A stretch of DNA of 64,000 nt from Oopsacas minuta (GCA_024704765.1 JAKMXF010000323.1:62001-126000); one strand, 5' to 3'; positions 2,121-42,520 are shown, numbered from the stretch's first letter. Notes: generated from the sequence alone by a model not told the origin. Program-made: numbers and translations.

Positions 2121-2849
2121 TCTAGACCTATGAGGTACACTAATCTGAATCAGACCTAATGAGATGCCCAGTGGCTTAAATCTGTTTGAAAGCTTAGCTT
2201 GAACCGGTTGAAATGAAATGAATTTGAAATATTGACATTTATATTTTAGGAATTCATGAAGTATTCGAATTAGCTCCGAAAAATCTCTTTAGGGTCTACT
2301 CTGATTCCATTTGGGAGATGATAACTTTCAACATCCCCTAGGGACTTACGCTTATGCTCAGTACAATGAGTATGATTCTTAATGAGAATACACCTATAAA
2401 CCAGTTACCTGTGAAATGATTTGTCGATCAGATTATGAAAATTATGTAATATTTTGTTTCTATTCGAAAGGAATTTATAACTTTACTATTTTAACATTGT
2501 AAAATTGGAAATTCCTTTCGCACGACTAAATTTAAATAGGTTTCTGGTAAACAATAGTTAGTATATGGAGAACATTAATACAGTTGGGCAATGAGTAAAT
2601 TTGGAACAGCAATCACTTCCAATTTACCACCAATTTCTTCGAAACGCTTGAAGGTTGTAAATACAGGCTTTAATGTAATTAAGAATGAAATTCTATATAG
2701 ATGGTATTGACACATGAAAATAGATCTCACCAAGAATAGCCCAAATAATTCAGCAAAATTTGTAGATATGATCACCAATAAATAATTTCGGTATATAATA
2801 CAATTCTAAATAGATAGTATTCATTCTCGCCAAAGATGTCTGCACGATT

Positions 2850-3060
2850 CTAGCATATTTTGATTAACGAATAAGTACAAACTACTGTCAGCACAGGCCA
2901 ATAGATACTCAAGGGACCATGGTAATCAGTGTTGCAGCAATCTGGGAATTTCATGACAGGAACGGGATATGATGGTCTTTTCTGGACGATCGGACTGGTC
3001 CAAACTGATGGATCGTTACAGACTACTAACATAAACCTGGTCAATTCGTGTTCATCGACC
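2850..3060 (-). pseudogene. Possible LTR-retrotransposon integrase remnant
   Basis: PVPVMKFPDCCNTDYHGPLSIYWPVLTVVCTYS loosely resembles the integrase core start (D-x-x-GP...LxvvDxyS). Very degenerate. Confidence 0.25.
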
Positions 3061-5199
3061 CTAAGGTTTTTTTCTCATGATCCGATATGACGGATCATCA
3101 GAAAGCTGCGAGCAAGATCCATGCCCTGCACGATAATGCGAAGCTTACACTCCAATAGAAGTGGTCACAGCGAAGGAGAAGGCGACAGAACAGGTGCAGA
3201 CAAAGCTAGAGGAGCACAAGGCGAATGTGTTGCTCTCTTCAACCTCTCTACGATCCTGAGATTAGAGCAAGTCTCCACGCGTAAGTCGGAAGCCATCCTT
3301 GCATGGGGAGAGCGGAACGGTCTGGACGGTACGAGCAGTTGGCGTTCGAATAACTACAACTGGCCCATCGCCACCGCAAACGTGCGTGCAGAGGCAGATG
3401 CTGAAGGCGCGTGTGTGGGGTTTGGAGTACAACGGAATTATGTTCGGGGCCACCTACTGAGGTAACACAAAGGAGTAAGTCCTCGAGGTGAAGGTCAAGG
3501 GTACTGTGGAGTTTGCCAGAATGCTGGATATGGCCGCTGATAGTTCAGGTGAGACCATCATAAACGTTCGAATTCAGCTGGTCACCGATCTCGATATGGA
3601 GGGCAAGAACCTTACCAAGTTAGCAAATGACGGTGCAGATGCGAAGACCCAAGGGCGCTGCCAAACTCCTATCTGACTTGGCCGAGGATCAGTCTTTACG
3701 AGCTACATTGTTCTGCACAGTATCAATCTCTCAGCTGTTGACGTGTTTGACGAAAGGTCCAACTGCCCACGTGGAAATTCCAATAAATAGTCACCTTTCT
3801 CTTAACATAATAGAGAATGGTTATTATTTAATGGAAGAAAAGAAATACAATATTTGAAAATACGGAGTCAAGATATTGTATTTGAATATATATAAGAAAA
3901 TAAATATATAAACATATTTGGCCCTGATACTTGACATTGTTCAGTCGAAATAATGAAAATTTCCCCATCAAATTAAAGCTGTTTCAGGAAGGAATCTACG
4001 AACTAAAATTTCAATGTTTCTACTTTGGGTAGAATTTCCACGGATATTTAACATCGTATTAAGTTAAAGTTAGTGTTGGAAGAAAAACTAAAAACTATTG
4101 TGTACTACCTGCAAGATATACTATGATCGCTAATTAAGGACAATGTATGATTTCAGAGAGGAACTTATATTTTGGGATTCAACGTTCATATTTTTGTTCA
4201 TCAAAATATTTGTGACAGGAAAGTTTCGGATATTTTACACTTTTTCTAGTATCATAGAAATAATTAAATAATGACACGATTTGGCTTGAAACGTATGAAA
4301 TGAAATATTTGCGAATGGCAAGTAAAAATCTTGACTCAGTAGATAACATTGATTTACCAAAAATATTTTGGGATGTAACATTTGCGTTTATCACCCCTTT
4401 CGATAGATGGTAATATTCTTAATATATCGACATCAGTAACCTTTAGACAGGTTAAGTAACAATTTCACTTCAGGTAGAATAAACATCCTACAAAATCACA
4501 CACTACGGCAATATCCGGGAATAGGCACAACTCCAAAATGTATTTGAATGCATTTTCCGAGACTCCATAACGGACAGAGTTGATATGAAAGGATCTTTTC
4601 GTTCAAAGGAGCTTTTCATTGTCCTGCGCTCAAAGGTTAGTCCGCTTGGTATTCTAGAGCATTTAACTGAGGATAGAGTCTTAGCAAAAGGGGGCACCGA
4701 ATGTACATTCTTTACTTAGGATACAAGATGCACCCAAGAATGGTGAGAGTCCATTAATTGAGGAATTGAATTTATCGATCGAACTACAACATGTAATTTA
4801 CTACAAGCTGATAGTATGTTAACTAATGGTTCAAAATCGTTCAAACAACATTTTAGAACCACAGAAATTTGGTATTAAGACGCTAGTCAGGAAAGAATCG
4901 CACATAACAAGTCTCTTGATACTCATAATGAGATCATCTTACATTTATGGAAAGCTATATACAATATATTTTAGAAATACTTGTGTTGTAGATGTAATAA
5001 CTTACATTTGTAAAGCACAACGTGGCATATCTAAGTCACTGAAAGGGGCTATATTATGTAAAAAGCAGGTGACACAACAATCAAGGAGAGACTTAGGGGA
5101 GTGGCTAATAAGTTCATAACAGCAATGAAGTTTCAGCTCAGGAGGCTACCCATCATCTTCTAAGTCTCTGCTCTGTCTGAATGCAGCTGGGCTAATGTT

Positions 5200-8130
5200 T
5201 ATTTAACACTAATCTGTTTGAAAAATGCGAAAGAAATTTAAAGTGAATGGCAGTTTTACAAAGTATGGCTCAAGACATTATAGTGACATTCTTTAGTCAG
5301 GTCTAATAGAACACGTCATGCATCAACATGATAAATTAAGGGACATTTGTTTAGCAAAATTAGCTTCAATGTGTGATTTCCAACCTACTCAGAGAATTAC
5401 TAAGATCAATCCTGAATTCCACCAGGATAAGTATGAAGATGAGACTAATCCTCTTCCACTAGGGCGTTCAATAAGTCTTGCGAGTGATATCATAGGACAT
5501 GATACAAACACTAGAAACTAATTCACTATATTATTTATTCAAAGTAATCCCCTCCTGCAGATACACAAAGTTTTAATCTTTCTACCCATTTGTAAACACA
5601 TTTCTGTACTCTTCTTCGGGGATGGATTTGAATTACTGGTACAGGTCCGTTCCGATTGCTTGTAATGTGTTGAATCTTTGTCTTGAAGGTAGATTTTAAG
5701 CTTGGGGAACAGCCAAAAATAACACGGAGCTAGGTCTGGTGAGTATGGTGGATGGGGAAGTAATTCTAACCCTTCTACATCCAAGAAATCTTTGGTAAGC
5801 TTAGCTGTATGGGAACTGCCGTTATCAATTAAAATCTTCATTCCTCGAGTTCCTGTTTTCGGGCGGTACTTTCTATATTTTTTATCAAATTTGGAAGCAC
5901 TTGCTCTGTAAAGAAAATAGCAGTAACAGCCTTGCCGCTCTCACAAGGTAATTGCAAGACAATTCCATGACTACTGAAGAAGATGCTATACATAATCTTA
6001 GGTTTTCTGAAGTCGGGCCTAGGAATTTTGGCCGGTTATTCATCGCCCCTCACCATGATCGCTTCTAATAATTTCTATATGGTGTTGAATAGTACACCCA
6101 CGTCTGGTCACCAGTAAAAATCTCTGTTAGGCATCTAGAATTGCAGTTCTCATAAGTTTCCAAGAGTTTCTGGGCAATATTCAGTCGTTCCAACCTTGGA
6201 TTCTCACTGAGCTTATGTGGGACGCATTTCCCACAAATCGATCGGTAGCCAAGCTCAGTCGTCAGAATTCTGTAAATAGCTTCCCGATGAAATCTCCATT
6301 CTTTGTCCTAGCTGAATATCAGTAATGCACTTGTCTTCCATGACCGTACATTCAATGAATGCGATATTCTCTGAATTAGTGGCGGATACCGGTCTCCCAG
6401 TTCGAGGCAAATCTGTGGCATCAGAATCACCAGATCTAAACTGGGCAGCCCATCGCTATACAGTAGATTTGGAAGGGCAATCCATGCACAATTTCTTCTG
6501 TAACTCGCTGAAGATCTGTACTGGCTGGATCTTGAGTATTGTGCGAAACTCTATGTAAGCTCGCCATTTGAGGTTGAAATTATCATCCTTTGAAGCCATA
6601 CATTCAAGAGTGGGTTTAAATTGACTGCACGTAATTATCTCAAAAATTCATAAATTGCATTGAATAAGTTTGAAACTTTCAGTATACGGAGTTTAACTAT
6701 ATGGGCTTATAATATATGAAAGTTAAATCTATTACTTGATTATTCCTAAGATATATCATGACCCGCAAGACTTAATGAACGCCCTGAGAGGCTACGCCAA
6801 TTTGTTTCTATACAAAGATTCTGGGAAAATCTCCGCTGTATAGTTAAAATGATTGGATTCGTAGTTATAACATAATGCAGAAGGAGAACAGTTAATGTTT
6901 TATTATACTTGGAGGTTGCTTACGTTTGCTCTGATAGCTTTGACTATAAATCTACCTATGAGAGTAATATTGATGTTATTAGACAAAATAGATCTTGTTT
7001 TGAGAGCAAAGAGCAGACTAATAAATTAGGCTATAGTATGTCTTCGAAGACGTAGATTCTGATCAGCTAAACCTTGAAGGAATTGCTGTAGAGGAGATAG
7101 TGCACAATGAAGTTGTAGCTGTAGTTGAGGTTACTGACTATCTGGTCGACAATCCAGGCGATCAAACTTGGAATGTGGACCCTATTTCGGATATTCTTAC
7201 AAGGGATTCTTCAACGTCCTAATAGGATGGGTGATGATGGGTTTGGTGGAATGCGTCGCAAGTTGAACTCGATTCAGTATATAATATTCATGCATATATT
7301 AAACTCCTTCAAAAACAACAAACAACTTCCGATGTAGCAGTATATTGAGGGAAGTTCTGGAGTCGGTAAGAGTACTGTAATTAGAGCTTTGTTTAAAGGT
7401 TTAACAATGTAATTAACTTATTACCTAGTATTAATCCAGATGCTATTAAAATGTCAAATAGGCCCAACAAACAGAGCAGCTCATTATATCCGTGGTATGA
7501 CATTACATTCTTCCTTTGCTTTACCTGAATTTAATGGTGCAATGCATAATCTTTCTTCCGATATTTCGAGTTCTTCACGTAGTAAACTGTTGGGATTAGA
7601 GATAATCATAATTGATGAGATATCCATGGTTAGTAATATAGTATTATCTCAAAAGATTGTCGATTGAAAACAATATTTGACACCTTTCTTGATTTTTTGG
7701 AGGTATTTCTACTATATGTGTTGCTGATTTCCAGCAGTTAAGACCAATGAATGATAGATATGTCTTCCAAGTACCAAATTCACGTGAAAATTATGATTTA
7801 TTGGTTGGTCCATACCTTTGCACGAAGTTCTCATTTGTGGAAATAACTGAAAGAATTAGACAAAGATGATAAAGAGTTGCAATGGTTGAAATATCTCTGC
7901 TAACTGAACTATGACTAAGGATATTATCAATCACATAAATGGTAGACAAATCAGAAAAGACTCACAGACAAACTTCCTTCTAAGGCTATTCACCTCTTCA
8001 GTACCAATGCTAGTGTTGATACTCATAACGAGCCTGTTCTTAGTGTATTAGATGCGGAAGGGTGTAAATTTACAGCTATTGAATCTATAGCATGTGACGC
8101 TAGTGGAGAGTTAACGAAGAAATGATGGTG
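5200..8130 (+). mobile_element. Decayed Helitron (PIF1-type helicase region), interrupted by a mariner; boundaries approximate
   Basis: Frame-broken PIF1 helicase motifs in order: LNSIQ...GSSGVGKSTVI (Walker A, ~7350), PTNRAAHYIRGMTLHSSFALP, IIIIDEISMV (Walker B, ~7610), ADFQQLRP, LFSTNASVDTHNE. Confidence 0.75.
5539..6600 (-). pseudogene. Mariner (DD34D) transposase pseudogene
   Basis: DNGSSHTA...HPPYSPDLAPCYFWLFPKLK in ORF 5539-5841; upstream HTH-region remnants and the GDQTW motif in broken frames. Confidence 0.85.
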
Positions 8131-8631
8131 GTAATAAAACAGCTGAATGTCTCCGACAACCAGTGAGATTCTTAAGCGCAAGAGTTCGTGGATGGTCAGC
8201 CAAGCTATTGGTATGGACCAAGTTTAGCTAGTAGGTACTGAAGCATCTCATAATTGAATCATGTACGATTTAGAATTACATCATCTTCTACAACATCGTA
8301 AAATCGATAGCCCTACATTTGAATGGAGTAGATGGAGATATGATAGGATTCGAAAGAATTGTGAAGATTTATTTGAATTGCAAGTTTCGACTTGAGTATG
8401 AATATGACAATACATATAAGATTTGATTGAATTTGATCTGAATAAATATAATACAAATTCAGAGCTCAGAATATCGTAGAGGAATGAAGGAAGAAGATTT
8501 ATTTACTACTAGCTCGTAGTTTTAACAAAGTTCACGTCCCTAAGGGAATATACACCCCTGGAACCAAAACTGGAGTAGTGAAATCGATCGTATTAAATCC
8601 AGAAAATTAACAATTTTAATAGCTAACTTAC

Positions 8632-9098
8632 TTTAGATCTAAGGCTCTTAGCAAATTCAGCAGCTCTCAAAAGGAGAGATGCATTACTAAGTCTAGTTCC
8701 ATCAACAGAATTTTTTGGAAGTTTGGCTTCTAATTGTTCAAGCATAGACTTAATTCCAAATCTTCGTTTGTGATCAGAAGAATACCTAAGTGAAATTGGA
8801 GGAGACTGAATGGGTAGTGGTAAAGAAATAGGAATTAGCGTATTCGAGTTAGATAAACCACAAGGAAGTGGGCCTTCAGTAATCCTGGGATTATTTGAGT
8901 TTGAATGGTTGCAAAATCGTTTTGAGGAAGGTACAGGTGATACAGAATCTGCAGTAGTATTTGATTTAGGGCTAGAAGAGAGGGGATTCCGAAAGTGCTC
9001 AAAAAAAGGGTGTAGTATTCGTTGTTGCGCAGTAACCTGCTCTTCTAACTGCATTAATCTTATTTGGAGACATTCAACAATCTTTCTCAAGTCTTCTT
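8632..9098 (-). CDS. Putative internal exon of a bHLH(-Zip) transcription factor, Mondo/MLX-like basic-helix region
   Basis: Open frame flanked by an acceptor (tttgtatttag|, exon starts 9098) and a donor (|GTAAGT at 8631). Encodes a coiled-coil-like start, an S/P-rich linker, then SDHKRRFGIKSMLEQLEAKLP...RLSNASLLLRAAEFAKSL, resembling the bHLH pattern AEQKRRFNIK...KxSKAxxLxxAxEYI. Confidence 0.5.
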
Positions 9099-10965
9099 CT
9101 AAATACAAACAATAATAATAAAATTGTTAGAGAAAGTATTAAAGATGAACTGATAACAAAAAGAATTATTATTACCTGTATTACGAGAAATAAAATATAT
9201 CAAAAAGGGTCAAAGAATACAATATTGTGAAACACAAGGAGCCTGAAACAAATGAAATACCAATATTTTGACAAACTCAATTAATTTTCGATTTATACCC
9301 TCGTCGCAAATTGATTTTAAAGCGAGGAAACAAGGATGTGTAGTTGCCTCAGTAAATATTCCTACAATAGCGATATGAGAAGAGTGAAACGCGAGGAGGC
9401 TCCTCTGCCCCTCAATTATCTACATCTGCTATATTTTGACTACAACAATTTATCTTGTTAGAGTAAAAAAAAGAAGAATGGGAGTGATAAATATTGGGAA
9501 ATCCACTTCCCTCAGGAATTGACAACATTATAGGAATTTATACCAATATGACTCATCGCAGAATCAACACTACCATTGATGGAATCCAGAACTAATCCGA
9601 TTGGAGTGGCAAATACAATGATGTGGGATCCTAAGTGAATTACTACTATATACGAATTCTTAGAATTCAATAATTCATTTTATGAATTTTCTACTCAATG
9701 TTACTTATTCATAATTCAAAATCTTGATTTAGTCGCCAAATGTGCCGGTTTGGGAGAGAGATCGGGCCACTTGGGATGTTATTATCCAAATTTCACCTCA
9801 AAAATTTAAATAGCCACAAGTTTATATAAATTTAATTTAATATTTCCCATATATGATATTCTAAGAAAAAGTGGCCGTAACAGCATATATAATATAGTTT
9901 GAGGTTGAATACCATATAATATTTCTACGATATATAGCTTTATTTGTGCGATTTGACGATATGTATTATACAATTTTATCATAAATCTATTTGTACACTA
10001 CAACCAACTATCTAACAACTAAGATATGCTATAATTCAAAGTTATGCGTAGATTAAATTGTGCGAGATGCGAAAACCGCACATTCACAAGATTAAATATA
10101 TGCCACTAGTAAAGCTGTATAGGTAGTTGAGAATTGTTTTGATGTTAATTATTTACAACGAGTACCACAGTGAGCTATTATGCGAATAACTAGTATTAGG
10201 GTTTACGCGTTCAATTTTGTATATTGGCTTATACAATGCATTATTACTGTATTGTAAGTCGACTACAAAGGTTAGTTTGTTGATTTGATTTTGTTGTATC
10301 ACATCAGGTTTTCAATGTAAGACGTAATATTAATTACCATATACAGTAATACAGAAATCCAGCTATTCACTTAACTTAGTTGTTATTCGAAGAAAATTGA
10401 ATATAAGAATATACTATGCTAACTGAAGAATAGCTAACATGCGAGTATCATATTGATGAATTAATATTAAATACAAGGGGAATTCATCTAAGGACTTTGA
10501 GAATATTATTCGTCACGTTTTCTGCTTTCCTGTGGTTTAGATTATTCGTTTGATGGTCTACTTGACAACAAGTGGAACAAATGATGATCTTTCTGAATTT
10601 TTCATCCAGGATTGTACAACCATAGATGTAGAGCTTCATTGCAACATCTTTAACCTACTTAGAAAATATGATTTGTTACCAGTGCTTGTATTCGCACTTC
10701 CTCCTGGTTGGTGGAATAATACGTTCGTAAACCCATGGATACGCCTGCATAATATACTTCGATAATCTCACACCATTTGATGCTCAGTCTCCTTGAACAT
10801 CCCTGCTGCAACTTGGTAGATAAGGTTCAAGAGCCAATCTAAATCTTTAGATAAGAATGTAAGGTGCTACAGGAAATACATCAATGGCACTTGCAGGTTC
10901 GTGTGTAATCCCTCACCGTAGGTTTGTATTGTTGCTCATCAGCTCTTTTTCATCAGAGGTTAGGC

Positions 10966-16809: not shown

Positions 16810-17572
16810 AAAATTTAGTACAGACCCCTATAGGATTGGAAACATTAGATACCAGTTAAATGTTGGAACAATTGACTTTCGAATTTCACGCACGTTTTCC
16901 CAAGTTGCAAACGAGGCCTTATCATTGGAGATAATATTTAAGATCTATCCATTTCCTTTCCCCAGCTTAAGTTGATATGCTAAAAATGTTGATTTTTCTG
17001 GTGAAACTATGTTACTGAGGGTTGGCATCGATTCTTCGTTATAGATTTTCCAAGCGATATTTGCGATGCCTTTAAAACCAATTAGTTCTACAGCTACAAT
17101 ATTCAAGTGGATAACACCGTAGCGAATAACAGAAATATTCTCAAGTTGTGCTAACTGACGGATGGCAGTAAGTATCCCAGTCTGATCGAACCTGATCTTT
17201 TTAGAATGAACTTGAATGTCATCAATCGATTTATTCCTCTCCACATTTGGAACCAATATATCACCGGTTTCTACATCACAGTATAAAACAGCAAGAAATG
17301 ATTGGGTGCTCTTAGGTTTAACAAAGGATCCATGGAATACTCGCACTCCACCACTCACCATCTAAGCTCTCAATAGATTTCTTACTCTTTCTGACATTAG
17401 ATGATACTTTAGACATTAGAGAATATACAGAATGTCTCTTTCCTTCTTCGAGATTTAGTAAACGCACCACTTGATCTGCTGCTTGATTGACATCATAGTC
17501 ATGAGCCTTCAATATGATAGCCAAGTAAAGACGTGTTTTCTGGCTTTCAGATAATATTTTGGCTTCAGCCAT
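16810..17572 (-). pseudogene. RAG1-like transposase N-terminal fragment (frameshifted)
   Basis: KSIDDIQVHSKKIRF aligns to KSLADLTTKGLRNRL; EKSTFLAYQLKLGKG aligns to DKSAFLFDSLEIGKT and AKSTFLLGQLEIGK; NVSNPIGV aligns to NVSDAPMGV. No catalytic core present. Confidence 0.65.
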
Positions 17573-19102: not shown

Positions 19103-19965
19103 TAATGTGCATATTACTTGACAAGAATATATACAAAGTTCAGAGTGGAAACTAGGGAAAACAAATTTTGCTGCCCAACAGGATGTCTTATGGCCGAGAG
19201 AAATTTCTACGAACTTTTCGCAGTATTGCATCCGTGATATTTGATTAACCTTTTCGTTCCTGAAGAAAATGAACGGCATATTCAATTTTAGCGCACTCAC
19301 TTTGCTTGGAAAGCATGTAAATGAACAATAATATGCATCACAAATTCAACAGATTACTGAAGCAGCTTCTGTCATTTATATAATGGATGCATAAACACAG
19401 AATACAGCAATGAAGTTCTACATTTGGTTGACCACAAAATAGAAACACTTAAATCCTTCATTTGATACTTTACATATTGCTCATTGAATTTATCTAGGAT
19501 CTAATTCATAATTCAAAATGGTATAAATTGAAGATAGGAATTTGGGCTAAATGCACCCTAGCAGCCCCACTGTGCGAGTATAACATTTATTTATGTTCAT
19601 CCCCGCATATTAATTTTATAGGGATAATAATATGTCAAATGATTAGTGCAGTCGGTGAGAATTAGGGTAGGTTGTTGGCCATCACTTTCAAACTTCTTCT
19701 GTCCTACCTCCAGAGCCTCAACGAGAACTTCAACCAATTCGTCCTACTAAAAATCATGGTATCATTGTGGAATTGATCTCATATGCAATTTGTCTAGTAC
19801 AGTACTTGGATTTGAACACATTATATAATCGTTGGCTACTTGAGTAAATTTGTAATAGCGAGAACATACTACAATATGACCGGAGAACAGAATTCTCAAG
19901 CAAGGGAACTATGATTTTTCTAAATAAAGATTTTGGCAATAATACTCAAAATTAGAAATTGCAAA

Positions 19966-29544: not shown

Positions 29545-30635
29545 TAAGATCTGGAGTATTTCTACAGAAGGTCATTAAAAATAATTTTGATGCACCATAG
29601 ATACTAAAAAATTTAAATTTTCGCCAGTCGCACAAAGACCTAGAAAGCGACAAGTTATACATCCATTATTTATCGATTGTGTATTTGTTCCGAATTGATT
29701 GACGAAAAGGTGACACTTGTATTTCAGATAATATCATTTCAATTCTAACAGAAAATGAGACTATGGCTTCAGAAATTATAAATTTATACTGTATAACTCA
29801 TTTGACAAGTGAATATAGTTTGCTTCATTCTTACCTTTTGTCTAAGTTAGTTGACCAAGGGTAATCAACAAATTGAAATTTCACAGATGTTAGACAGGTG
29901 GGCTCACTATCGGGCAACGTCAGACTAAAATGTTTTATTCTTCACTAGGCTTTGTCATTTGAATAGTTCTGATAGTGGATATAGTATATACAATGAAGAA
30001 AATTTACTTTTGATAAATCATCGTCATATTTTCTGCTATATAGCGGAAGAGTTGTTACTCCATGAAAATATGACGTCAAAAAACACAATATTCGTTTTGT
30101 GTATGGCACTATGTGGATAGGTACATCGTGAAGTTCCAAATTTCATTGAATGCGATTATCCATATACCTTTGACAAAAAAAAGTCTCAAATTTGGATATC
30201 ATCAGGATATATACATGATATCAATCAATCAATGAAAATATATGATATCGATAGAAATGTGGGTCTGATAAACATTATGAGTAGTTAAGTCTGGGTGAGT
30301 GATATATCAAAGTTTAGGGTACTAAGTAGATGTAGGGAGAGTCAATATCCCTTAAGTTTAAATCTCAGATCACTTAGATGGCTCTGGGTGTCATAAAATC
30401 TACAATCGGTTTGATGGAATACCGAAGTTCAACACCAAAAATGATATTCTTTTTGGATTCAAGGTTACTTCACTAATTGGCTCATCTGGCACTACTGTTT
30501 GGCTAAATGATATCCCAAATTCACAATTTTGTGTACGACCTAAAAGAGTTTAGAGTTATTATTGTTAAGAATAAGAATATTAATCTAAATCGAGTACATT
30601 TCTGCGCGATAATACTCAATAATTACATGATTGGT

Positions 30636-32989: not shown

Positions 32990-33590
32990 TAGATAGTTAC
33001 ATGCGATGAGGCTTGGATATATTCTTATGCGTCTGAGAAAGACACAATCTCAGGTTTGGGTGTTTCCAGAAGAGGATACTCCAACAAAGATGGTGAGTGC
33101 ATATACAACTGGGATACAAATAGTTGCCACTTTAGTTTGTAAAAGAGGTCATATAGCAACTGTACTATTGACAGAATAAAGAACAATAACTGCTAAATGC
33201 TATTGTGCAGTTTTTCTTTCAGGAGTCTGTAAAACCTCTGTGAATAGCGTTCTAAGTCAGGACTTAAAGGGTTACAATTGCATCACCAAAATGCAAGCTA
33301 TCACAACGACGGTATCACCCAAGACATCCTTGCCTAGAAACCCATTCAAATGCTTGGCCATCCGCCATATCCTCCTGACCTTGCACCCTGTGACTTCTTT
33401 GTATTCGCAAATGTTAAAGATCTTATGTTTGGTCTCGCTTTTCATCCCCCAGTAAAGTTGTCGACATCTATAAAGAACACCTTGATATCTAAAGCAAATC
33501 ACAGTGGTGCAATATGATTGTAAATTGGTTTGAAAAGATGAAAATATGATACAAGCTAGAGGTGAATACTTTGAGAATATATAAGAATTT
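32990..33590 (+). pseudogene. Mariner transposase 3' fragment; boundaries approximate
   Basis: VWVFPEEDTPTK and HPPYPPDLAPCDFFVF motifs. Confidence 0.75.
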
Positions 33591-34034
33591 TAGTTCAATA
33601 CCTTGTAGACCAGCGGTCGGCAACCTCTGGCCCGCGAAGCGAATTCATCCGGCCCGCGGCGCTTTCCTTAGCATCCATATTGTGAACTCCAATTTGTTCA
33701 TCAATAGGAAGCAAAAAATTTAGAATATTATTTTTCTAAGATAATCCTTGATGGTGAATGCATGGTTCAATACATCGTTCAATGAATAGTGGTGATTATG
33801 CATGCGCAATGTATTTCTTTAGCACCTTACAAGTTACAACCTGTCAATAATATAATTGAATAAATATAATCATTACGTCTTTTCAAGGCTGCTCTTTGTT
33901 CACTTATCATTGTTAGTAAATAGTCCTTGATTTCAAAAGCATTTTAGAAGGTATTTTTTCAATTTTTCACTAACTTCACTTATCTTTAAGTTTAGCATTT
34001 TTCGAGTGATTTTGTTGTTCAGATTTATTTACGT

Positions 34035-34416
34035 ATGGCATCAAATAAGAGAAGAAAAGTAGATCGGGAAAATCGAACATTCAGGGAAAGTTAGACTGAA
34101 CAATACATTTTTATTATGTTTGGAGATAAGCCTTTATGTTTACTGTGTAATGTAACTGTGGCTGTTGTAAAAGAGTGTAATCTAAAGCGACATTACACAA
34201 CAAAGCACTCGGAGAAATTTGATTCAATTATTGGAAAAGAGCGAAAAGTAAAGATTAATTCTCTACGAGGATCCTGTGTAAACAACAAGATATTTTCACA
34301 AAGCAGGATACCGAATCCGCAAACAGTACTTGTGCAAGTTTCGCTATCAGTGAAATCATTGGCAGAAAAATGAAACCGTTTACTGAAGGAGAATTTGTGA
34401 AGAATGTCTTCTAACT
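34035..34416 (+). pseudogene. hAT transposase 5' part (BED-type zinc finger)
   Basis: MASNKRRKVDRENRTF..., CLLC...RHYTTKH, KPFTEGEFVK. The frame resumes after the insertion as ECLL/TAVDFVCPEKK. Confidence 0.85.
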
Positions 34417-34442
34417 CACAGTGGCACACCCCCTGGAAATTG
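34417..34442 (+). repeat. RSS-like 5' end of element A: heptamer + 10-bp spacer + TGGAAATTG
   Basis: CACAGTG (34417-23), GCACACCCCC (34424-33), TGGAAATTG (34434-42). Confidence 0.85.
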
Positions 34443-35295
34443 GTCAAAATTTCAATCCGATATTTAGTAACCATTTAAAGTTCATTGGAAAGAGAAATAT
34501 CCAATTACTTGAAATGTCTAAAATTGTTATGATCCATCATTTAGTTTAGGAACAACTGGAATGTATATAAGCATTACAATTTCTTGCTCAGAAATTATTC
34601 TTGAAAACCACAGATATTCATTTATATCAATGAACTTAAATTCCAGTATCTAAGCAACTAATACATTCCAAAGACTTCATTCCATTGCATTTTCGACTAC
34701 TCTCTTATTATAGTGATTATATAAGCGGAGTTCAAATAATAAATCCTTAAAATAGCTCAAATATTTTGATAAATTTTTCTGTTGGATTTCTGTCGTCACT
34801 CAACTTCGAAGTCTCATAACTTCATCTGTCGCGTTCTGTCAAGTTGTCTCATGAGTTTTATAAGACAGCATTTTTAATTCTCTATAAAATACAACAATTT
34901 CCAGGTTCCCGAAAATTCGCGCAAATATAGTTTCAATCACATGAACTTTTGAATTTATCTAATATTTTTAAAAATTCTCTTTTCAAAATTTATATAAATA
35001 TTATGGTTGCTTAGCGATATAATCAAAACGTGAAGTTATTTACATTTTTATGCTTGTGTTTACAAAATTCAGCCTGTAATTAATATAAATAAATGTTCTC
35101 ATCACGTATTTCTACAAAGATTCCATTAAAAAATCAACACTCTACTGTAAGAAAACGTTTCGTCAAAAGTTCCTTAATTCTTAGATTTCAGAATGTATTT
35201 TATAAGCTTATAAAACAAACATGCATATATATATAATCTTCCTTTTGCCCTGTATTTACAATTTGTTAATAAATAATATATTAATTATCTAGAAA

Positions 35296-36549
35296 ATGAA
35301 CAACCTTCAAGCTTTTCAGTTTTATTGTGAGCATAAATTACTTAGCACCCGTTCAATCGCAGACCAATTTATTTCAACTCATGGTTTTGATCGAGATCAG
35401 CAAAATTTCTTTCGTCTGAAGTTCAATGATATTCAAAAAGAGAGAGCCTCTTTTCATAAATATTCGGACCTTGATACTTGGAATTCCATGTGCTTCTGTC
35501 CTCTGCCAAAGAAGCCAGGTTAAGTGCCTCTTCTTCATTAACCATTAACTTTGAAGAAGACTTTAATCTTTCAAAAAAGAAATCGCTCGCTGACTTAACG
35601 ACCAAAGGTTTGAGAAATCGGCTCTCTTCTCTTAAGTCTCACCTCGAATCAGTCGCTGAAAACGAGCATGTAACTCCAAAGACTCTTGCAACTTATCTCT
35701 TACTACTTTGTTGCAATGAGGAGCAGGACATGAATAGTGCCAATGTTTGTAAAGAGATACTCGAGAAGGGAAACTCATCTCCTATCTACCCACAATTACC
35801 ACTTGATAAATCTGCCTTTCTTTTCGATTCGCTTGAGATCGGTAAAACAAAGTATTTAGAACTTCGGCGTACGTTACTATCTGAAGATCTCAAGTTACCA
35901 GGCTACAATAGTGTAGCTAAACATCGGGCTCAAATTAATTTGCAGGATAAGGTGCGTATAATTCATAGAGAATTTCCATGTGGAGTAGGTATTTCTTACA
36001 CCAGACTACTCACCCATACAGTTGAACGAATTGTATCTAACTTAAGTCCTGATAACCTTGTCTATCCGCTGAAAGTTCGAGTATCCGATGGCTTAGATGG
36101 ATCTGGGTGTCATCGAGTTTACCAGCAAGCTATATCTAACCCTGACCTCTCGACTAAAACCTTCATTCTATTTGGTTTCAAGGTTAACTCAATCATAAAT
36201 GCAAAAGATCATATCCTATGGAAACCTCATCATCCGAATTCGCCATTTTGCACTCGACCAGTTGCCCTCTTAGCCCTACCAGAAAATGAAGAGAGTGTCA
36301 AGTTTTTGATGGACTCATTAAGAAATAACGAAACTTCAACTATCGAAGAGAGTGGTTTGTGTTTACACAACGGAAATGCAGAGGTCAAGATCATTAGATC
36401 TCATTTCGATACAAAGATGGCAAAAATCTTAAGCGGTGCTGGTGGTGCTAATTGTCAAATGTGTACTGCAACGTTCCAACAGATACACGATATTAGCATA
36501 GTTCAAAATGGCTTTCCCATAAATAGGACTATCCGTGATGCACGTGATG
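35296..36549 (+). pseudogene. RAG1L: RAG1-like transposase A, 5' part (one frameshift near 35510)
   Basis: NBD-like KKSLADLTTKGLRNRLSSLKSHLESVAENE; SDGLDGSG (first catalytic D at 36096); PNSPFCTRPV; HFDTKM (second D at 36408); CQMC zinc ligands. Confidence 0.9.
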
Positions 36550-36575
36550 CACAGTGGGCTTTTTGCTGGAAATAG
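36550..36575 (+). repeat. RSS-like 5' end of element B: heptamer + 10-bp spacer + TGGAAATAG
   Basis: CACAGTG (36550-56), GGCTTTTTGC (36557-66), TGGAAATAG (36567-75). Confidence 0.9.
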
Positions 36576-37125
36576 CATGAAATTTTTACCCCCTCAGAAT
36601 TGTATTTCCTTATTATCATTGAATTCACAATCCTTTCAAACCTAGAAATTAGTAATTTCATTCTGATTCAACAAGTAAATTGGTTGTTATGGTGATGAAT
36701 ATTTGCGGCTTCTTGTAATTGGAATTTCTGTTGTGTGGTATATCAAAATCGATCAAGTTTCATAGTTATATCTTTAGCACTTGTAACTAAGAAGAAAGAA
36801 TTCCTTTACAATAATGAAACATTTATATTTCAATTATCTAATTTACATCTTGAAATGTCGTTTGGTTTCTAACTTTCTATTCTAAAACTAGATAAAACGC
36901 GATGACTATTTAGGACATTTTTTTTCGGCGTCCACAGGATATTTTATGCTGAAACTTGTTGTGGCGTTTCGTTGCGTGAACTCTCACTGGTCTTAAAATG
37001 TAGGTTGTAATAATAAATTCAAAAAATATAATAGTTTAGACCCGCCGGAGGGCGCCCAAAGTATCAAGCATTCATTTGAATGGGTGTAACTTTAATGTAA
37101 AATTTCCCTATGAAATATTAGCATT

Positions 37126-39219
37126 ATGAATAACAAGGAAGCTTTTGACTTTCTATCCTCACGTAAATCTGTCAGAGATGCAACAATCGTATTTATGGAT
37201 AGTCAGCAACTTGATGATAAATATTATAGTTGTATCCGATACAAATTCGTTGAGTTGAAGGGTGATAGAGAGATATTTCGTAAAAGAAACGACCTAAATA
37301 CATGGGATGATATGATATTCTTTGACAATTCAACATTGGCAGAGAAGAGGCGGTTATTGTCTGAAGGTGATATTTGTACTCCTAATCAAGTTCATGCAAA
37401 GGCTATCAGGAAACCATTCCTAGAATTAACAATTAAAGGACAAAGGGTACATCTGGGACCTCTTGAAGCCCTGATTAAAAGCTTAGCAGCTAATGAGAAC
37501 GTGGATAGCAAAACGATGGCAGCCATGGCTCTGCAATTTGTCTCATCTTCTTCAGGAGATTACTCCACCAGTTCCTTCTGTCTGGAAATAGTCAGCAAAG
37601 GCACATTTCAAGGCAATATAAAGACACACATCTCAATTGCTAAGTCTACGTTCCTCCTAGGGCAACTGGAAATAGGTAAGTGAAAGTACATTGAATTGAG
37701 GAGACTTTGTAAGTCAGACAATGTACTATTCCCTAAGTATGAGCTAATTTCCCAGTATCGAGCAGATATTACTCTGGAGAAGGAATTCATTTTTATCCGC
37801 AATGTGTCTGATGCGCCTATGGGAGTAGGGACATCTTATATCTCTATCATCAAACAGACAATTTCCCGCCTACTCGAATCACTTCCCACAGATTCTGAAT
37901 TTGAATTCCCGTTGACATTTTCTGCAACAGATGGCTTGGATGGATCTGGATCCCATCAAGTTTATAATCAGATTCAAGAGTCACCAGATATTGGTTCCAA
38001 AAATTTCATTCTCTTTGCTTTCAAACCTCTCGCTATCCACGACAGCGCAAACAAACTTATTTGGGAAAACGAAAGGCCCAACTCACAATTTCAGATTCGC
38101 CCAGTCACTTTACTAGCTGCCAAAGAAAATAGCGAAAATGTACGTCATCTAATGGATACTTATATTAATCCTTAAGTAGCAGACATGGAAGAAAATGGGA
38201 TACTACTCTCGCAAGGACTTGTGAGGATAAAATTGCTCAGGACCATGTTCGATGGAAAAATGGCAGGAATTCTATCTGGAGCCGGTGGTGCTCACTGCCA
38301 ACTCTGTATTCCAACTTTCAAACAACTGCATGATGTCGAACTTATACGAGATGGTTTTCCTATTAATCGTTCAATAACATCGGCTAAAGAACTGTTTCAA
38401 AGCGTGAATGAAGTAGAATTTCTATCTCTAAGTTCCAATGACCGTCTTGGATTGACTCACCAACCTATTTCCGACATCGATATAATTTGCTCTTCTCCAC
38501 TACATTCATATTTGTGCATCTTCAGATGGTTTATGACAGTCGTTTATCATCTGCAATCAGGTGCAAGGAAGTGGTCACCATCATCCTTAGGCATAAAAAA
38601 CTCAATGAAGTTTGTTTCAGGCTTATTGATGGAAAAGACTGGTATGAAGATTGATCAACCCAGCAGTGATGGTGGCACTACATCAACTGGCAATGTTGCT
38701 CGAAATTGTTTCTTGGACAAAAACCAATTTCTTTACTGGGTTTGTTCCTTGATACCAACAGAATACCATGAAAATATAAAGGTCATTCACACTAACCTTT
38801 CAGTATGTTTGCGTATTTACAACAGCGACCGAGAGATAAACACTGAAAGACTGGATATTCTTTGCAAGGACACATACGAATACATTGTAATCAGGTTCCC
38901 TTGGGCAAACATCAGTCCAACCTTGCATAAATTACTAGCCCATTCTTCAGAACTCATTAGAACTTGTAACAATAGCCATGGACTTAAAGTCTTCTCTGAA
39001 GAAGCAGTTGAAGTTTCAAACAAACTCGTCCGAAGGTATCGCGAACACCTTGCCAGAAAAATGTCGTTTTCTCTGAATACTCGAGATATCTTTATACGAC
39101 TGATGTGTAATAGTGATCCTGTCCTCAATATGTATAGAAAATTTACAAAAGCAAGCAAGAAAACCTACTCTTCTGAACCTCCAGACCAAGAAATTCTTTT
39201 CTCACAATTAACTTGCTAA
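37126..39219 (+). pseudogene. RAG1L: RAG1-like transposase B, 697 codons in a single frame with two premature stops
   Basis: ORFs 37126-37683, 37696-38175 and 38185-39219 share one frame, separated by TGA (37681) and TAA (38173). Motifs: TDGLDGSG (D 37939), MFDGKM (D 38251), CQLC, TGNVARNCF, TLHKLLAH, SEEAVEVSNKLVRRYR (E 39010), the last resembling RAG1 HKTLAH...SEGNESGNKLFRRFR. Confidence 0.93.
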
Positions 39220-39494
39220 TAAATAATGATTGAAATAGATGGAAGCACAAGATACAATTTAAATGTGGGTATATTAAATGTGTGTCTATGATCCAAAATA
39301 AGCTTTCTATCGCCTCTAGCAACTGAATTTTAAGCTCAAAAACTATAATTTATGATAATATGAAAGGTGTCAATGACGTCATAACTTTTAATGAGATGAC
39401 CTAGATTTTTTTTTTTTATGCAGAAATCGTTTTCTCAGGGGTAATTTCCTATTGGCTAATAATGCATCATATATCTCTATCTTGCATGGTTTTC

Positions 39495-39530
39495 CTATTT
39501 CCATTTCACCCCCCAAAAATGCCCACTGTG
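39495..39530 (-). repeat. RSS-like 3' end of element B: heptamer + 20-bp spacer + TGGAAATAG
   Basis: On minus: CACAGTG (39530-24), 20-bp spacer (39523-04), TGGAAATAG (39503-39495). Confidence 0.9.
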
Positions 39531-39535
39531 TGATG

Positions 39536-40389
39536 TATTTGATGAGGTTGATGAGGAAGTATTTTTGTCTTTGCCAACAAATCAAAGATTCAATTTAACA
39601 CACAAACCGATCTCAGAAAAAGACATCATATCAGCTTCTCCTCTACATGCATATTTGAGAACATTTAGTTGGTTCCTAATATTGATTTGCCATTTACAGT
39701 GTGGTGCTATTCAAAAATGGTCACCAACTTCGCCAATAATTCTTGGGGCCAAGAAATTTATTACTAGCCTTATTGAAGAAAAACTTAGTATATCCATTGA
39801 CACACCATCAGTCCAAGGAGGAACCACCACAACCGGAAATGTTGTTCGGAGATGCTTCACACGTAGCGATGATACTGTGCAAGATTTTCTCTATTGGGTA
39901 TTGACGGTTGTTCCTCAAGAGATACATCAGGTTGTCACTACAATCTTTAATAATTTGAGTGCTATCCTGAGATTGTATAATAGCAACAGGAAAGTGGATA
40001 CTGAAGGCCTTGATAATGTATGCCGAGAGACTTACGAATCCATTTTAACCAATTTTTCATGGGCACAAGTAACCCCAACTTTACATAAACTTCTAGCCCA
40101 TGCACCACAAATAATTGCAGATCATAACGATGGGTTTGGCTTAGAAGATTTGTCTGAAGAAGGCCTTGAATCTTGCAATAAATTGGTCAGGCGATACCAT
40201 GAGAGACTCTCAAGAAAATTTAGCTTTGAAGACAACGTTAAAGATGTGTTCGTCAGGCTTATCTCTCAAAGTGATCCAATATTAGCATCATTTCGTAATA
40301 TTACCAAAAACGATTCGGAGCCAGATCTATCTGAGTTAAAGAGCTGTCAAGATATTTTGGTGAAGTCTCTAATTATAAATACGTTATAG
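39536..40389 (+). pseudogene. RAG1L: RAG1-like transposase A, 3' part
   Basis: SPLHAYLR, GGTTTTGNVVRRCF, TPTLHKLLAH, SEEGLESCNKLVRRYHERLSRK (catalytic E at 40168), SQSDP. In frame with the 5' part after excision of B. Confidence 0.92.
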
Positions 40390-40691
40390 TTTGCAGTTCA
40401 ATGAACGGTAGGTCATTTCAACAAGAAATGTGGTCTCATAAGTTTATAAAAATGTACATTAAATAGTGTTAATAATATCAAAACATAAAACATTCAATTT
40501 CTGAACCTATAACTCACAAATTGGTTTAATTAAAATCGATAAAAAAATCAAAATATTTTTGAATGTGACAATGACATCATTACTTTCACACCCAAAGACT
40601 TAGAAAAATCTAGTTACGTCAATCGATTCCTTGGATACGATTCCCCATATGTCAATAATATAGTTTCATACGTTATCTAGTACCCTAATAC

Positions 40692-40726
40692 CTACTTCCA
40701 GGTTTTAGCCACTTCGTGCCACTGTG
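40692..40726 (-). repeat. RSS-like 3' end of element A: heptamer + 19-bp spacer + TGGAAGTAG
   Basis: On minus: CACAGTG (40726-20), 19-bp spacer (40719-01), TGGAAGTAG (40700-40692). Confidence 0.85.
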
Positions 40727-40731
40727 TAACT

Positions 40732-42143
40732 GCGGTTGACTTTGTTTGCCCTGAGAAAAAAAGCCTGTTCGCTAACATCAGTCTTTCTGCACGAACTGTC
40801 ACACGTAGAATTGAAGATTTATCTGCTGACATCAAACTATCATTAAAAGAACTTACGCGCCTATTTGAATTTTTCGCCATTGTTTGGATGAGAGTACTGA
40901 TCTCAAGGATACTGCTCAAGTTGCTGTTTTTATAAGAGGGATTAATGCCCACTTTGATATCACTGAAGAATTTGCAAGCTTGGTTCCACTTAGGGATACT
41001 ACAACTGATATAAATATTTTTAATGCTGTTAAAAGGGTTATAGATGACTTTGGTCTAAAATTAGATGATCTTTGTGGAGTGATAACAGATGGTGCCCCAG
41101 CAATGACCGGTACCGTGAACGGAGCTGTTTCATTAATTGAAAAAGAGATGAGAAATGTTGGAACCGAGCGAAATTTAGTACGGACACACTACATAATTCA
41201 TCTTCAAGCCCTATGTGCAAAATCTTTGAGGATGCAAGAAGTCATGCGAGTGGTTGTTAAGACTGTGAACTTTGTACGCTCAAGGGGGTTGAATCATCGT
41301 CAATTTCAACAACTGATGGAAGAGATAGATTCTCAATACGGTGATTTATTATATTATTGCGAAGTTCGCTGGTTAAGCAGAGGTGCCATGCTAGAGAGAG
41401 TGTATCAGCTGAGAAATGAATTGACGACATTCGTTAGAGAAAAGGGTTTGGAAGTTCCTGAATTTAGTGATTCAAAATGGTTGTCAGATTTTGCTTTTCT
41501 TGTGGATATTACCAATCACTTGAACAGTTTAAATTTGAAACTACAGGGAAAGAACCAGTTAGTTAACGTCCTTTATGAACATGTATGTGCATTTCAAGTT
41601 AAGTTGCGATTGTGGGAGTTTCAATTGGATAAGCAGAATTGTGCACATTTTCCTAGTCTTAATGCAAATCAGCCAATTGATGTAACTTACTATTCTACTT
41701 TTATATCTGATCTAAGCGCACAATTTGATATCCGGTTTGCTGACGTAGAGAAGTATCAAAGGGAGTTCAGTTATTTCGCTAGTCCATTTGGTGTCAATTA
41801 TATTGAGGCCCCAGAAGAGATGCAATTGGAACTAATCGAGCTTCAAAATTCTGTTGAGCTTAAGTCAAGGTACCGGGATCTTTCTCTTGTGGAATTCTAT
41901 CAGAAGTACTTGACAAATGACAAATTTCCAGTAATGAGGAAGCATGCCAAGACAATTGCAGTACTTTTTAGTAGTACTTATGTTTGCGAGCAACTTTTCT
42001 CAAGAATGAAATATGCAAAAAACAAGCTAAGAACGGGATTAAAGGACGACCATTTGGAAAATGTAATGCGATTATCAACTTCTACAATATCACCTGATGT
42101 AATAAGACTGTCAAAGGACGGACAACATCAAAAATTGCATTAA
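40732..42143 (+). pseudogene. hAT transposase main body (GTF2IRD2/SPIN-like)
   Basis: LDESTDLKDTAQVAVFIRG, TDGAPAM, HxIIHLQALCAK, CEVRWLSRG, LQG, STYVCEQLFS: standard hAT DDE and dimerization motifs; 419-aa open stretch. Confidence 0.95.
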
Positions 42144-42520
42144 TAAGTCACTTATTCTAGTTTTCTTCAATTATTAAAGACAATTCTAACATATTTATTT
42201 ATAATTACCAATTCGACAATTGATAAATTTCGAATAAGATCAGAGAATGGTGATCGCTTGGCCCCGCGCAATGCACTGAAAGACTCAATCTGACCCGCAG
42301 GCTCAAAAGGTTGCCGACCCCTGTTGTAGACATTTTGTGTGGCTAAAATCTATTCTGTGTTAAAACCATGCTATCAGCAATTTAATACTTGAGAGTTGTT
42401 AATGACAGGCTACAAGTAAATTTGAAACAATGGCTATGAATGAATGAGAACACATTCCTGTGTGGCTAAGGAAATGTGTTTCGATTTGTTGAGGCCATAA
42501 CTTAAAATTTCTCATTTATA

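Follow-up and report, generated by a model that had tools for sequence, protein, structure and literature searches.

A 64,000-nucleotide stretch of DNA from Oopsacas minuta (GCA_024704765.1 JAKMXF010000323.1:62001-126000; hereafter the window, with positions counted from its first letter) contains two nested transposons, elements A and B, which represent two Transib (RAG1-related, RAG2-less) families of this hexactinellid sponge or of a very close relative. Each end of both elements is bipartite, with a heptamer, CACAGTG, separated from an inner 9-mer by a spacer that is 10 bp long at the 5' end and 19 or 20 bp long at the 3' end. Given the conservation of this layout and the presence of a homologue of the RAG1 nonamer-binding domain (NBD) in the transposase, the 9-mer is very probably a site for the transposase whose spacing is constrained. 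The fuller reading, in which the ends are bipartite, the NBD homologue reads the 9-mer and both spacer lengths are selected for a paired complex of one short and one long end, is one that we favour, taken jointly, with moderate confidence.

Bipartite ends of elements A and B

The four ends lie at the following positions.

34417-34442 (+): 5' end of A, with heptamer CACAGTG at 34417-34423, 10-bp spacer at 34424-34433 and 9-mer TGGAAATTG at 34434-34442
40692-40726 (-): 3' end of A, with heptamer at 40726-40720, 19-bp spacer and 9-mer TGGAAGTAG at 40700-40692
36550-36575 (+): 5' end of B, with heptamer CACAGTG, 10-bp spacer and 9-mer TGGAAATAG at 36567-36575
39495-39530 (-): 3' end of B, with heptamer at 39530-39524, 20-bp spacer and 9-mer TGGAAATAG at 39503-39495

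These spacers of 10, 19, 10 and 20 bp match to the base those counted in an earlier reading of the window made from its letters alone (the sequence-only reading), which had also recorded, correctly, that the spacers of A and B are unlike in sequence while the motif is kept. The pattern CACAGTG-N(8-25)-TGGAARTWG has four matches in the window against 0.00 expected from 100 dinucleotide-preserving shuffles, and CACAGTG by itself occurs 12 times against 4.9 expected. Each end carries a terminal block composed of CACAGTGG and a few family-specific bases, and the consensus of the inner 9-mer is TGGAAATAG. Within a family, the first 7-10 bases past the heptamer are common to both ends, and the long end resembles the short end plus 9-10 bases. 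In both A and B the end with the 10-bp spacer lies upstream of the transposase reading frames.

The heptamer of the A and B ends is the same as that of the V(D)J recombination signal sequence (RSS). The 9-mer, TGGAARTWG, is identical to the A-rich RSS nonamer ACAAAAACC at three of nine positions, all within the central A run, which begins 21 bases into the short end and 30-31 into the long end (22 and 33 in the RSS). The earlier description of the 9-mer as unrelated to the RSS nonamer holds only approximately: the A run does match, and the distance that separates it from the heptamer differs by no more than 1-3 bp from the one in the 12- and 23-RSS. Beyond the 9-mer, too, the two ends are unlike. 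In the sponge families the 5' box is followed, 2-3 bases on, by an A/T-rich AAAATTT-like tract (for example, window 34443-34456), and in several of them the 3' box is followed by G(C/T)ATTTT (for example, window 40678-40691).

Recurrence of the layout in related families

Genomic loci around homologous transposases were scanned for inverted CACNNTG heptamers with an exact target-site duplication (TSD) of 5 bp, the 9-mer being ignored. Apart from A and B, the scan gave three chance pairs and six real elements, each of the latter with a short end and a long one. The elements and ends in the related loci are given below with their short and long spacer lengths.

L001, 5236-8614: 10/19, exact TSD
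L002, 4990-11711: 10/19, exact TSD, from O. minuta
L004, 7423-10360: 10/20, exact TSD
L004, 13396-15053: 10/19, exact TSD, a 1.66-kb non-autonomous element
L005, 9384-12378: 10/19, exact TSD
L007, 9314-12336: 9/19 when anchored on GAATAG, exact TSD, from another assembly
L001, 4441-10763: 10/20, TSD with one mismatch
L006: 10/18, no TSD
L003: right end only, with a spacer of 19
L008: TACAGTG-10-CGGTAATAG and CACAGTG-19-CGGTAATAG, no matching TSD

Over the 202 kb scanned, which hold 47 heptamers, and with up to two mismatches allowed in the box, spacers of 10 bp were counted nine times, 18 bp once, 19 bp seven times and 20 bp three times. The remaining entries of the histogram are one chance two-mismatch match at spacer 20, found at a 10-spacer end, and four scattered singles, and a control placed 300 bp inward of the heptamers gave nothing at offsets of 10, 18, 19 or 20. 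Solo ends or homotypic end pairs were not found in these 202 kb, and all ten complete TSD-flanked elements (nine with an exact TSD, one with a mismatch) are heterotypic. The spacer histogram and logo of further ends, one of the checks that the sequence-only reading had named, show a conserved 9-mer and spacers in two narrow classes. An arrangement of the box as a subterminal repeat array was considered and rejected, since there is a single copy per end. In the L001 locus, which comes from another sponge assembly, the A-like element at 5236-8614 is nested in the B-like element at 4441-10763, the reverse of the order in the window.

The layout recurs in eight families (six of them from sponge or sponge-like assemblies), which include the sponge families A, B and C. 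Across these eight the short spacer is 9-10 bp (9 only once) and the long spacer 18-20 bp, and the difference between them is kept at 9-10 bp, about one helical turn as had been noted for A and B. What had been called a 10/20 rule holds for the short spacer of 10; the usual long spacer is 19, with 20 confined to the B family.

Metagenome contigs were also scanned for the exact 5'-end motif, which gave 52 loci. All but one of these were set aside as chance matches with neither transposase nor partner end, and L046 alone is real. Together with a further family, designated P0253, the non-sponge elements are as follows.

L046 (JGI metagenome contig Ga0099797_101824), 926-4917: 10/19, TGGAAATAG at both ends, TSD CTGGG
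P0253 family (L064 729-5765, L065 95-5005 and L066-L069): CACAGTG-19-TGGTAAAAC upstream of the gene and CACAGTG-10-TGGTAAAAC downstream

L046 has an apparently intact 733-aa open reading frame (ORF) at 2220-4421, with a CX2CX4HX4H knuckle at the C terminus, and its product is 22.5% identical to a B-like sponge transposase. In the P0253 family, six contigs, each from a different sample (GCA_024449705.1, TARA, other metagenomes and two SRA runs), carry one and the same 817-aa ORF, again with a CX2CX4HX4H zinc-knuckle-like tail. The family keeps the 10/19 pair with the orientation to the gene reversed. Two P0253-family copies and L008 have no matching TSDs and so provide weaker support; the missing TSDs are probably due to repeats collapsed in assembly. 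The more distant L009-L011, on marine metagenome contigs, have no recognisable left ends, which makes them neutral with respect to the 10/19 layout. The right end of L009 is CACAGTG-19-GCAAAAAAAAAG, with an A-rich, RSS-like box in place of TGGAAATAG.

Several details of these distant elements may be recorded. L046 has a second TGGAAATTG 3 bp past its 3' box (offset 31) and GCAAAAAAG directly past its 5' box; its relatives are mostly marine-metagenome proteins, with one, 45% identical, from the krill Meganyctiphanes norvegica. The P0253 family has a third common motif, AAATGCTC, further inward at both ends. At L009 3437-4130, two distant Transib copies stand tail to tail with a 305-nt inverted repeat.

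Probable constraint on spacing

Information content was calculated from one representative of each of six families. At 2 bits, the heptamer plus G does not vary and neither does the GG of the box, while spacer positions carry 0.1-1 bit. In the closer family pairs, the adjoining subterminal DNA has undergone 0.6-2.1 indel events per 29 bp, and the spacer lengths are unchanged. The B family provides an instance within the spacer itself, where a +1/-1 pair of indels around a G run leaves the long spacer at 20. Geometry of the 10/19 type spans transposases that are 22-50% identical and spacers of unrelated sequence. That the 9-mer acts as a functional second box, the nonamer equivalent proposed in the sequence-only reading, follows from its fixed position, its occurrence once per end and its retention in at least eight families in which the spacers have turned over.

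Boundaries and mobility of the nested elements

The two elements and their TSDs have the following coordinates.

34417-40726 (+): element A, a Transib transposon of 6310 bp including the nested B, delimited by the scan for heptamers with an exact 5-bp TSD, a jump in depth and an empty site
34412-34416 (left) and 40727-40731 (right), no strand: TSD of A, TAACT, perfect, with a single TAACT in empty-site contigs
36550-39530 (+): element B, a Transib of a different family, 2981 bp, within the transposase gene of A
36545-36549 (left) and 39531-39535 (right), no strand: TSD of B, TGATG, perfect, with a single TGATG in contigs of A without B

The boundaries were tested by placing contigs of public runs on the element ends and reading the word depth. 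Precisely at 34417 this depth climbs from a few hundred into the thousands, and it drops after 40726. In each run, 15-16 contigs with mutually unrelated flanks end at 40726, and 5-7 end at 34416/34417. The empty site of A is seen in contigs of the host hAT element that run from ...GTCTTC-TAACT into GCGGTTG..., and such contigs are found at high depth in the source sample of the window and in the runs of two other organisms. The empty site of B is seen in A contigs that run from ...GCACG-TGATG into TATTTGA.... The multi-flank contig ends and the empty sites independently confirm the boundaries and TSDs, and A and B are truly mobile, with exactly defined limits.

Two other organisms (runs X5 and X6) have B-family ends at high depth, flanked by other DNA, and the A family is essentially absent from them; the two families thus differ in host distribution. 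In each of these two organisms, one contig has a B long spacer that is 1 bp shorter, through a deletion at 39515.

Transposases and superfamily assignment

The transposase genes of A and B are both disrupted, and their parts are located as follows.

35296-36549 (+): N-terminal part of the A transposase, split by a frameshift near 35500 into the frames 35296-35523 and 35478-36549 and interrupted at 36549 by B
about 35565-35765 (+): NBD-like region of A
39536-40389 (+): C-terminal part of the A transposase, in frame after B and the second TGATG, with the catalytic-glutamate motif SEEGLESCNK
37126-39219 (+): B transposase in pieces 37126-37683, 37696-38175 and 38185-39219, with two in-frame stops between them
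about 37396-37596 (+): NBD-like region of B

Among proteins, the closest matches are annotated ones of Oopsacas minuta, with identities of up to 93-98%, and the N-terminal part of the A transposase is 93% identical to LOD99_12128 of this species. The B transposase, in which the motifs DGLDGSG and FDGKM contain the first two catalytic aspartates, is 68% identical to the B-like protein P0025, and the A and B transposases are 41-49% identical to each other. Pfam RAG1 matches the C-terminal pieces with E values of 1.9e-5, which is that of A and lies just below the curated cut-off, and 3.6e-4; PF26100 (RAG1_RNase_H) was matched on homologues. Of the proteins with a solved structure, the Helicoverpa Transib transposase (HzTransib, 6PQN) is closest, with E values of 1e-13 and 2e-24, the latter for the C-terminal part of A, and amphioxus RAG1L (BbeRAG1L, E 2e-4) and RAG1 (E 2e-3) are far behind it. 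To our knowledge, HzTransib of Helicoverpa zea is the sole Transib with solved structures (PDB 6PQN and others). Compared as a model, the sponge protein matches RAG1 with a Foldseek E value of 1.6e-16 and a VIA Z of 22.

The ends and gene content point the same way. All termini are CACAGTG(G) apart from a single degraded TACAGTG, and the related loci have 5-bp TSDs (CAAAG, AGACA, CAGAC, AAGTC, CTGAG, TGCAG and CTGGG). Unnested elements are 2.9-4.0 kb long (4.9-5.0 kb for P0253-family copies), with the sponge families at about 3 kb, and have one transposase frame, which is broken in most. No second long ORF that could encode a RAG2-like partner was found in A, B or related elements, in a comparison that did not include a kelch-domain search. 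The RAG1-like core, the 5-bp TSD, the CAC terminus and the single gene assign A and B to Transib and not to the RAG-like (RAGL) transposons.

An NBD homologue as candidate reader of the 9-mer

A profile of the region between the N terminus and the core was built from 22 sequences and searched against the PDB. The best match is the crystal structure of the RAG1 NBD with DNA (3GNA, E 2.7e-5), and the next matches are all RAG1 chains. The AlphaFold model of P0025 has a mean predicted local distance difference test score (pLDDT) of 89.5; its residues 89-155 superimpose on RAG1 389-456 with an rmsd of 2.7 Å for 67 of 68 residues (Z 7.0), and the alignment to RAG1 391-896 takes in residues 91-566 (Z 22). 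When a RAG1 chain contains the NBD, its alignment is longer by about 70 columns than when it does not. The solved HzTransib chain, which has the same DDE core as the sponge elements, aligns only from sponge residue 164 and hence lacks both the N-terminal domain and the NBD. Judged by profile and model, the sponge transposase carries a RAG1-type NBD homologue, and this domain would most likely be the part that reads the 9-mer. The NBD region can be aligned between the sponge and L046 transposases, which have the same 9-mer, whereas the first ~80 residues cannot.

Residues 1-62 of P0025 (window 37126-37311 in B) are modelled as a helical domain with a pLDDT of ~94, which precedes a disordered linker and the NBD. 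This domain is conserved among the sponge families, has no Pfam match and is not alignable to L046.

Proposed mechanism and alternatives

We propose that the transposase would cleave at the heptamer, and that its N-terminal NBD homologue would hold the one inner 9-mer box of each end. A paired-end complex would take one box at a distance of 10 bp and one at 19-20 bp, about one helical turn apart, in an arrangement like that of the RAG1 NBD dimer on a 12- and a 23-RSS. If the complex is assembled from a short end and a long end, both spacer lengths would be held by selection, and by analogy with the RSS we infer that heterotypic pairing is required.

A number of observations weigh against this proposal. 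The long spacer tolerates lengths of 18-20 bp. Descent alone would give heterotypic ends to every copy, and only a single non-autonomous element was seen. The A/T-rich tract past the 5' box and GCATTTT past the 3' box mean that the identity of an end may rest on more than its spacer length. The link between spacer and gene orientation is not fixed: the placement of the short spacer upstream of the gene, noted in the sequence-only reading, is true for A and B and is reversed in the P0253 family, where the long end is upstream. The P0253-family copies and L008 that have no matching TSDs come from short assemblies. As regards the reader, the GRPR motif of the RAG1 NBD is RKP in B and KKS in A, and the box is G-rich on its 5' side, unlike the A-rich RSS nonamer. 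Finally, every copy recovered from the sponge assemblies carries a stop or a frameshift.

The asymmetry could be functional with no pairing rule, in that each end is bound and cleaved independently and the spacing, together with the outer sequence, marks 5' or 3' identity. Such a label could be of use in ordered assembly, to a host factor that bends DNA at the long end or to a promoter in the 5' end, and symmetric substrates would work. We regard this as a possible but not a likely explanation. It would account for the differences past the 9-mer in several families and for the variation of the long spacer, and it is in line with the finding that RAG1 without RAG2 lacks a 12/23 preference (PMC8355894), as the elements of the A/B type are without RAG2. 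Independent ends would not, however, explain why both spacer lengths stay within ±1 across transposases that are 22% identical, or why the 10/19 pair is kept when gene orientation flips in P0253, and a dimeric reader that spans the two ends would call for such a difference of about one helical turn (9-10 bp).

It is unlikely that the 9-mer is read by another part of the transposase or by a host protein instead of the NBD homologue. Two such parts can be named. The extra N-terminal domain (P0025 residues 1-62) is well folded in the model and joined by a disordered linker, but the ~80 N-terminal residues cannot be aligned between sponge and L046 proteins despite their identical 9-mer, and the NBD region is the N-terminal segment that they have in common. 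The C-terminal CX2CX4HX4H knuckle of the non-sponge relatives, L046 and P0253, recalls amphioxus RAGL, in which the C-terminal tail, and not NBD*, dominates binding to the terminal inverted repeat (TIR; PMC7204232, PMC10462144); the sponge proteins have no knuckle, as seen at the C terminus of A, and the amphioxus tail binds the TR2 region adjoining the heptamer, not the distal box. The poorly kept GRPR motif is a further point in favour of another reader.

Already disfavoured, and highly improbable, is a frozen accident in which an ancestral indel of 9-10 bp in one TIR was inherited, the box position and the asymmetry are of no consequence and ~10 terminal bp suffice, a proposal made for many RAGL-B elements: all families could have had a single ancestor with a 10/19 layout, and the long spacer does look like the short one with a 9-bp insert, but the spacers are fully turned over between families (0.1-1 bit against 2 bits in the heptamer and GG), the flanking non-coding DNA gains 0.6-2.1 indels per 29 bp even between closer families, compensated indels keep the B long spacer at 20, and the box is identical where the transposases are 22% identical.

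Comparison with known systems

End asymmetry based on spacing has a precedent outside the RAG family. The Drosophila P element has internal transposase sites ~21 bp (5') and ~9 bp (3') from its terminal repeats, and one end of each type is needed. Its reader is an unrelated THAP domain and its TSD is 8 bp, and its similarity to the sponge core is distant (Z 7-8).

The V(D)J RSS shares with the A and B ends the heptamer CACAGTG, the order of heptamer, spacer and 9-mer, and two spacer classes about one turn apart, and RAG1, like the sponge transposase, has its NBD N-terminal to a homologous DDE core. The spacers differ, at 12±1 and 23±1 bp in the RSS against 10 (once 9) and 18-20 bp in elements of the A/B type, and so does the setting, which for the RSS is the antigen-receptor loci and for A and B the ends of RAG2-less mobile elements with TSDs.

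Asymmetric ends have been described in Transib and RAGL elements before, and A and B are a further example, with a box and spacer values of their own. Kapitonov & Jurka (2005) described Transib families with RSS12- and RSS23-like 5' and 3' ends and derived the 12/23 rule from them (PMC1131882). Transib5 (Drosophila) and Transib2_AG and TransibN1-N3_AG (Anopheles) resemble A and B as single-gene Transibs with a 5-bp TSD, a CAC-heptamer and a second 9-mer, and they have the short spacer at the 5' end and the long one at the 3' end, about one helical turn apart. The difference, in a comparison by description, lies in spacers of ~12/23 with an A-rich RSS-like nonamer in the Drosophila and Anopheles Transibs and of 10/19-20 with TGGAAATAG in A and B; the hosts are insects in the one case and a glass sponge and marine eukaryotes in the present clade. 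Yakovenko et al. have built a hypothesis on the RSS-like ends of Transibs (PMC8355894).

Tao et al. (2022) state that asymmetric bipartite TIRs are found in every Subgroup I Transib and in some of Subgroup II, and that Transibs have an NBD equivalent (PMC9435367). They also describe AanRAGL, which has two conserved boxes with spacers of 4/13 bp and a second box that is not A-rich; its 9-bp asymmetry is like that of the sponge elements, and its spacer values and box sequence differ. Subgroup I is there marked by the CTT1 zinc knuckle, which the sponge proteins do not have, L046 and P0253 having CX2CX4HX4H. Sponges are not mentioned in the article or in the supplements searched. The novelty that the sequence-only reading attached to the ends was thus overstated, since 12/23-like asymmetric Transib ends were described in PMC1131882, and other bipartite TIRs and NBD equivalents in PMC9435367.

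PflRAGL-A of the hemichordate Ptychodera flava, described by Martin et al. (2023), has ends composed of heptamer, TR2, asymmetric spacer and nonamer with a 10-bp asymmetry (PMC10462144). It resembles the sponge elements in the family-specific stretch past the heptamer, the asymmetric spacer, the nonamer-like box and the NBD, and differs in having RAG2L, a GRPR NBD, a CCGHC tail and an AT-rich box, whereas the sponge elements are RAG2-less with a core nearer HzTransib. HzTransib has the same 5-bp TSD chemistry (PMC10462144).

Significance for the origin of the 12/23 rule

As asymmetry of Transib TIRs and NBD equivalents are already published, the qualitative picture is unchanged by A and B. The conservation of the layout across families is nevertheless unusually clear. 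No published description of Transib in Porifera was found in the literature searched, which gives the occurrence in a sponge a modest taxonomic interest.

How the 12/23 rule arose is debated, with the 'Transib seed' hypothesis (PMC8355894) facing an opposing view (PMC10462144). The rule may have come down from transposon ends or may have evolved with RAG2, and to this debate the present families add a comparative data point: a RAG2-less Transib clade that extends from a glass sponge to marine eukaryotes, at ~22% identity, and keeps the RSS heptamer, a box, the 10/19(20) spacing and an NBD. It is a tentative suggestion that a rule of the 12/23 type, with spacers of ~10 and ~19 bp and an NBD dimer, is intrinsic to this large and ancient clade. 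Were it so, the rule would predate both RAG2 and the sequence of the RSS nonamer, and the 12/23 rule of V(D)J recombination would be an inherited property of the transposase and not a vertebrate or RAG2-dependent innovation. The intact ORFs of L046 and the P0253 family offer a natural system in which to test whether a 12/23-type rule predates RAG2.

Other features of the window

Element A interrupts a hAT-like element that occupies 33611-42323 of the window, and the ORFs of this host element lie on either side of A.

34116-34373: hAT ORF of Spin-doc zinc-finger type, upstream of A
40884-42143: hAT ORF with DUF4371 and hAT-dimerisation regions, downstream of A

The window also contains remains of other Transibs. 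A third lineage is represented by a coding fragment at 17330-17572 (-), which is N-terminal and ~40% identical to P0032 and P0039. An end of this remnant, CACAGTG at 19568-19574 (-), is followed by GGGCTGCTAGGGTGCATTTAGCCC; no TGGAA-type box was recognised there and its partner end was not found. A lone 60-codon fragment of the Transib catalytic region at 30341-30541 (+), with no ends nearby, is 50-57% identical to several sponge transposases. Just beyond the hAT element, a solitary CACAGTG at 33500-33527 (+) is followed after 12 bp by TGTAAATTG, which has two mismatches to the box, and the pair may be a degraded solo end or a product of chance.

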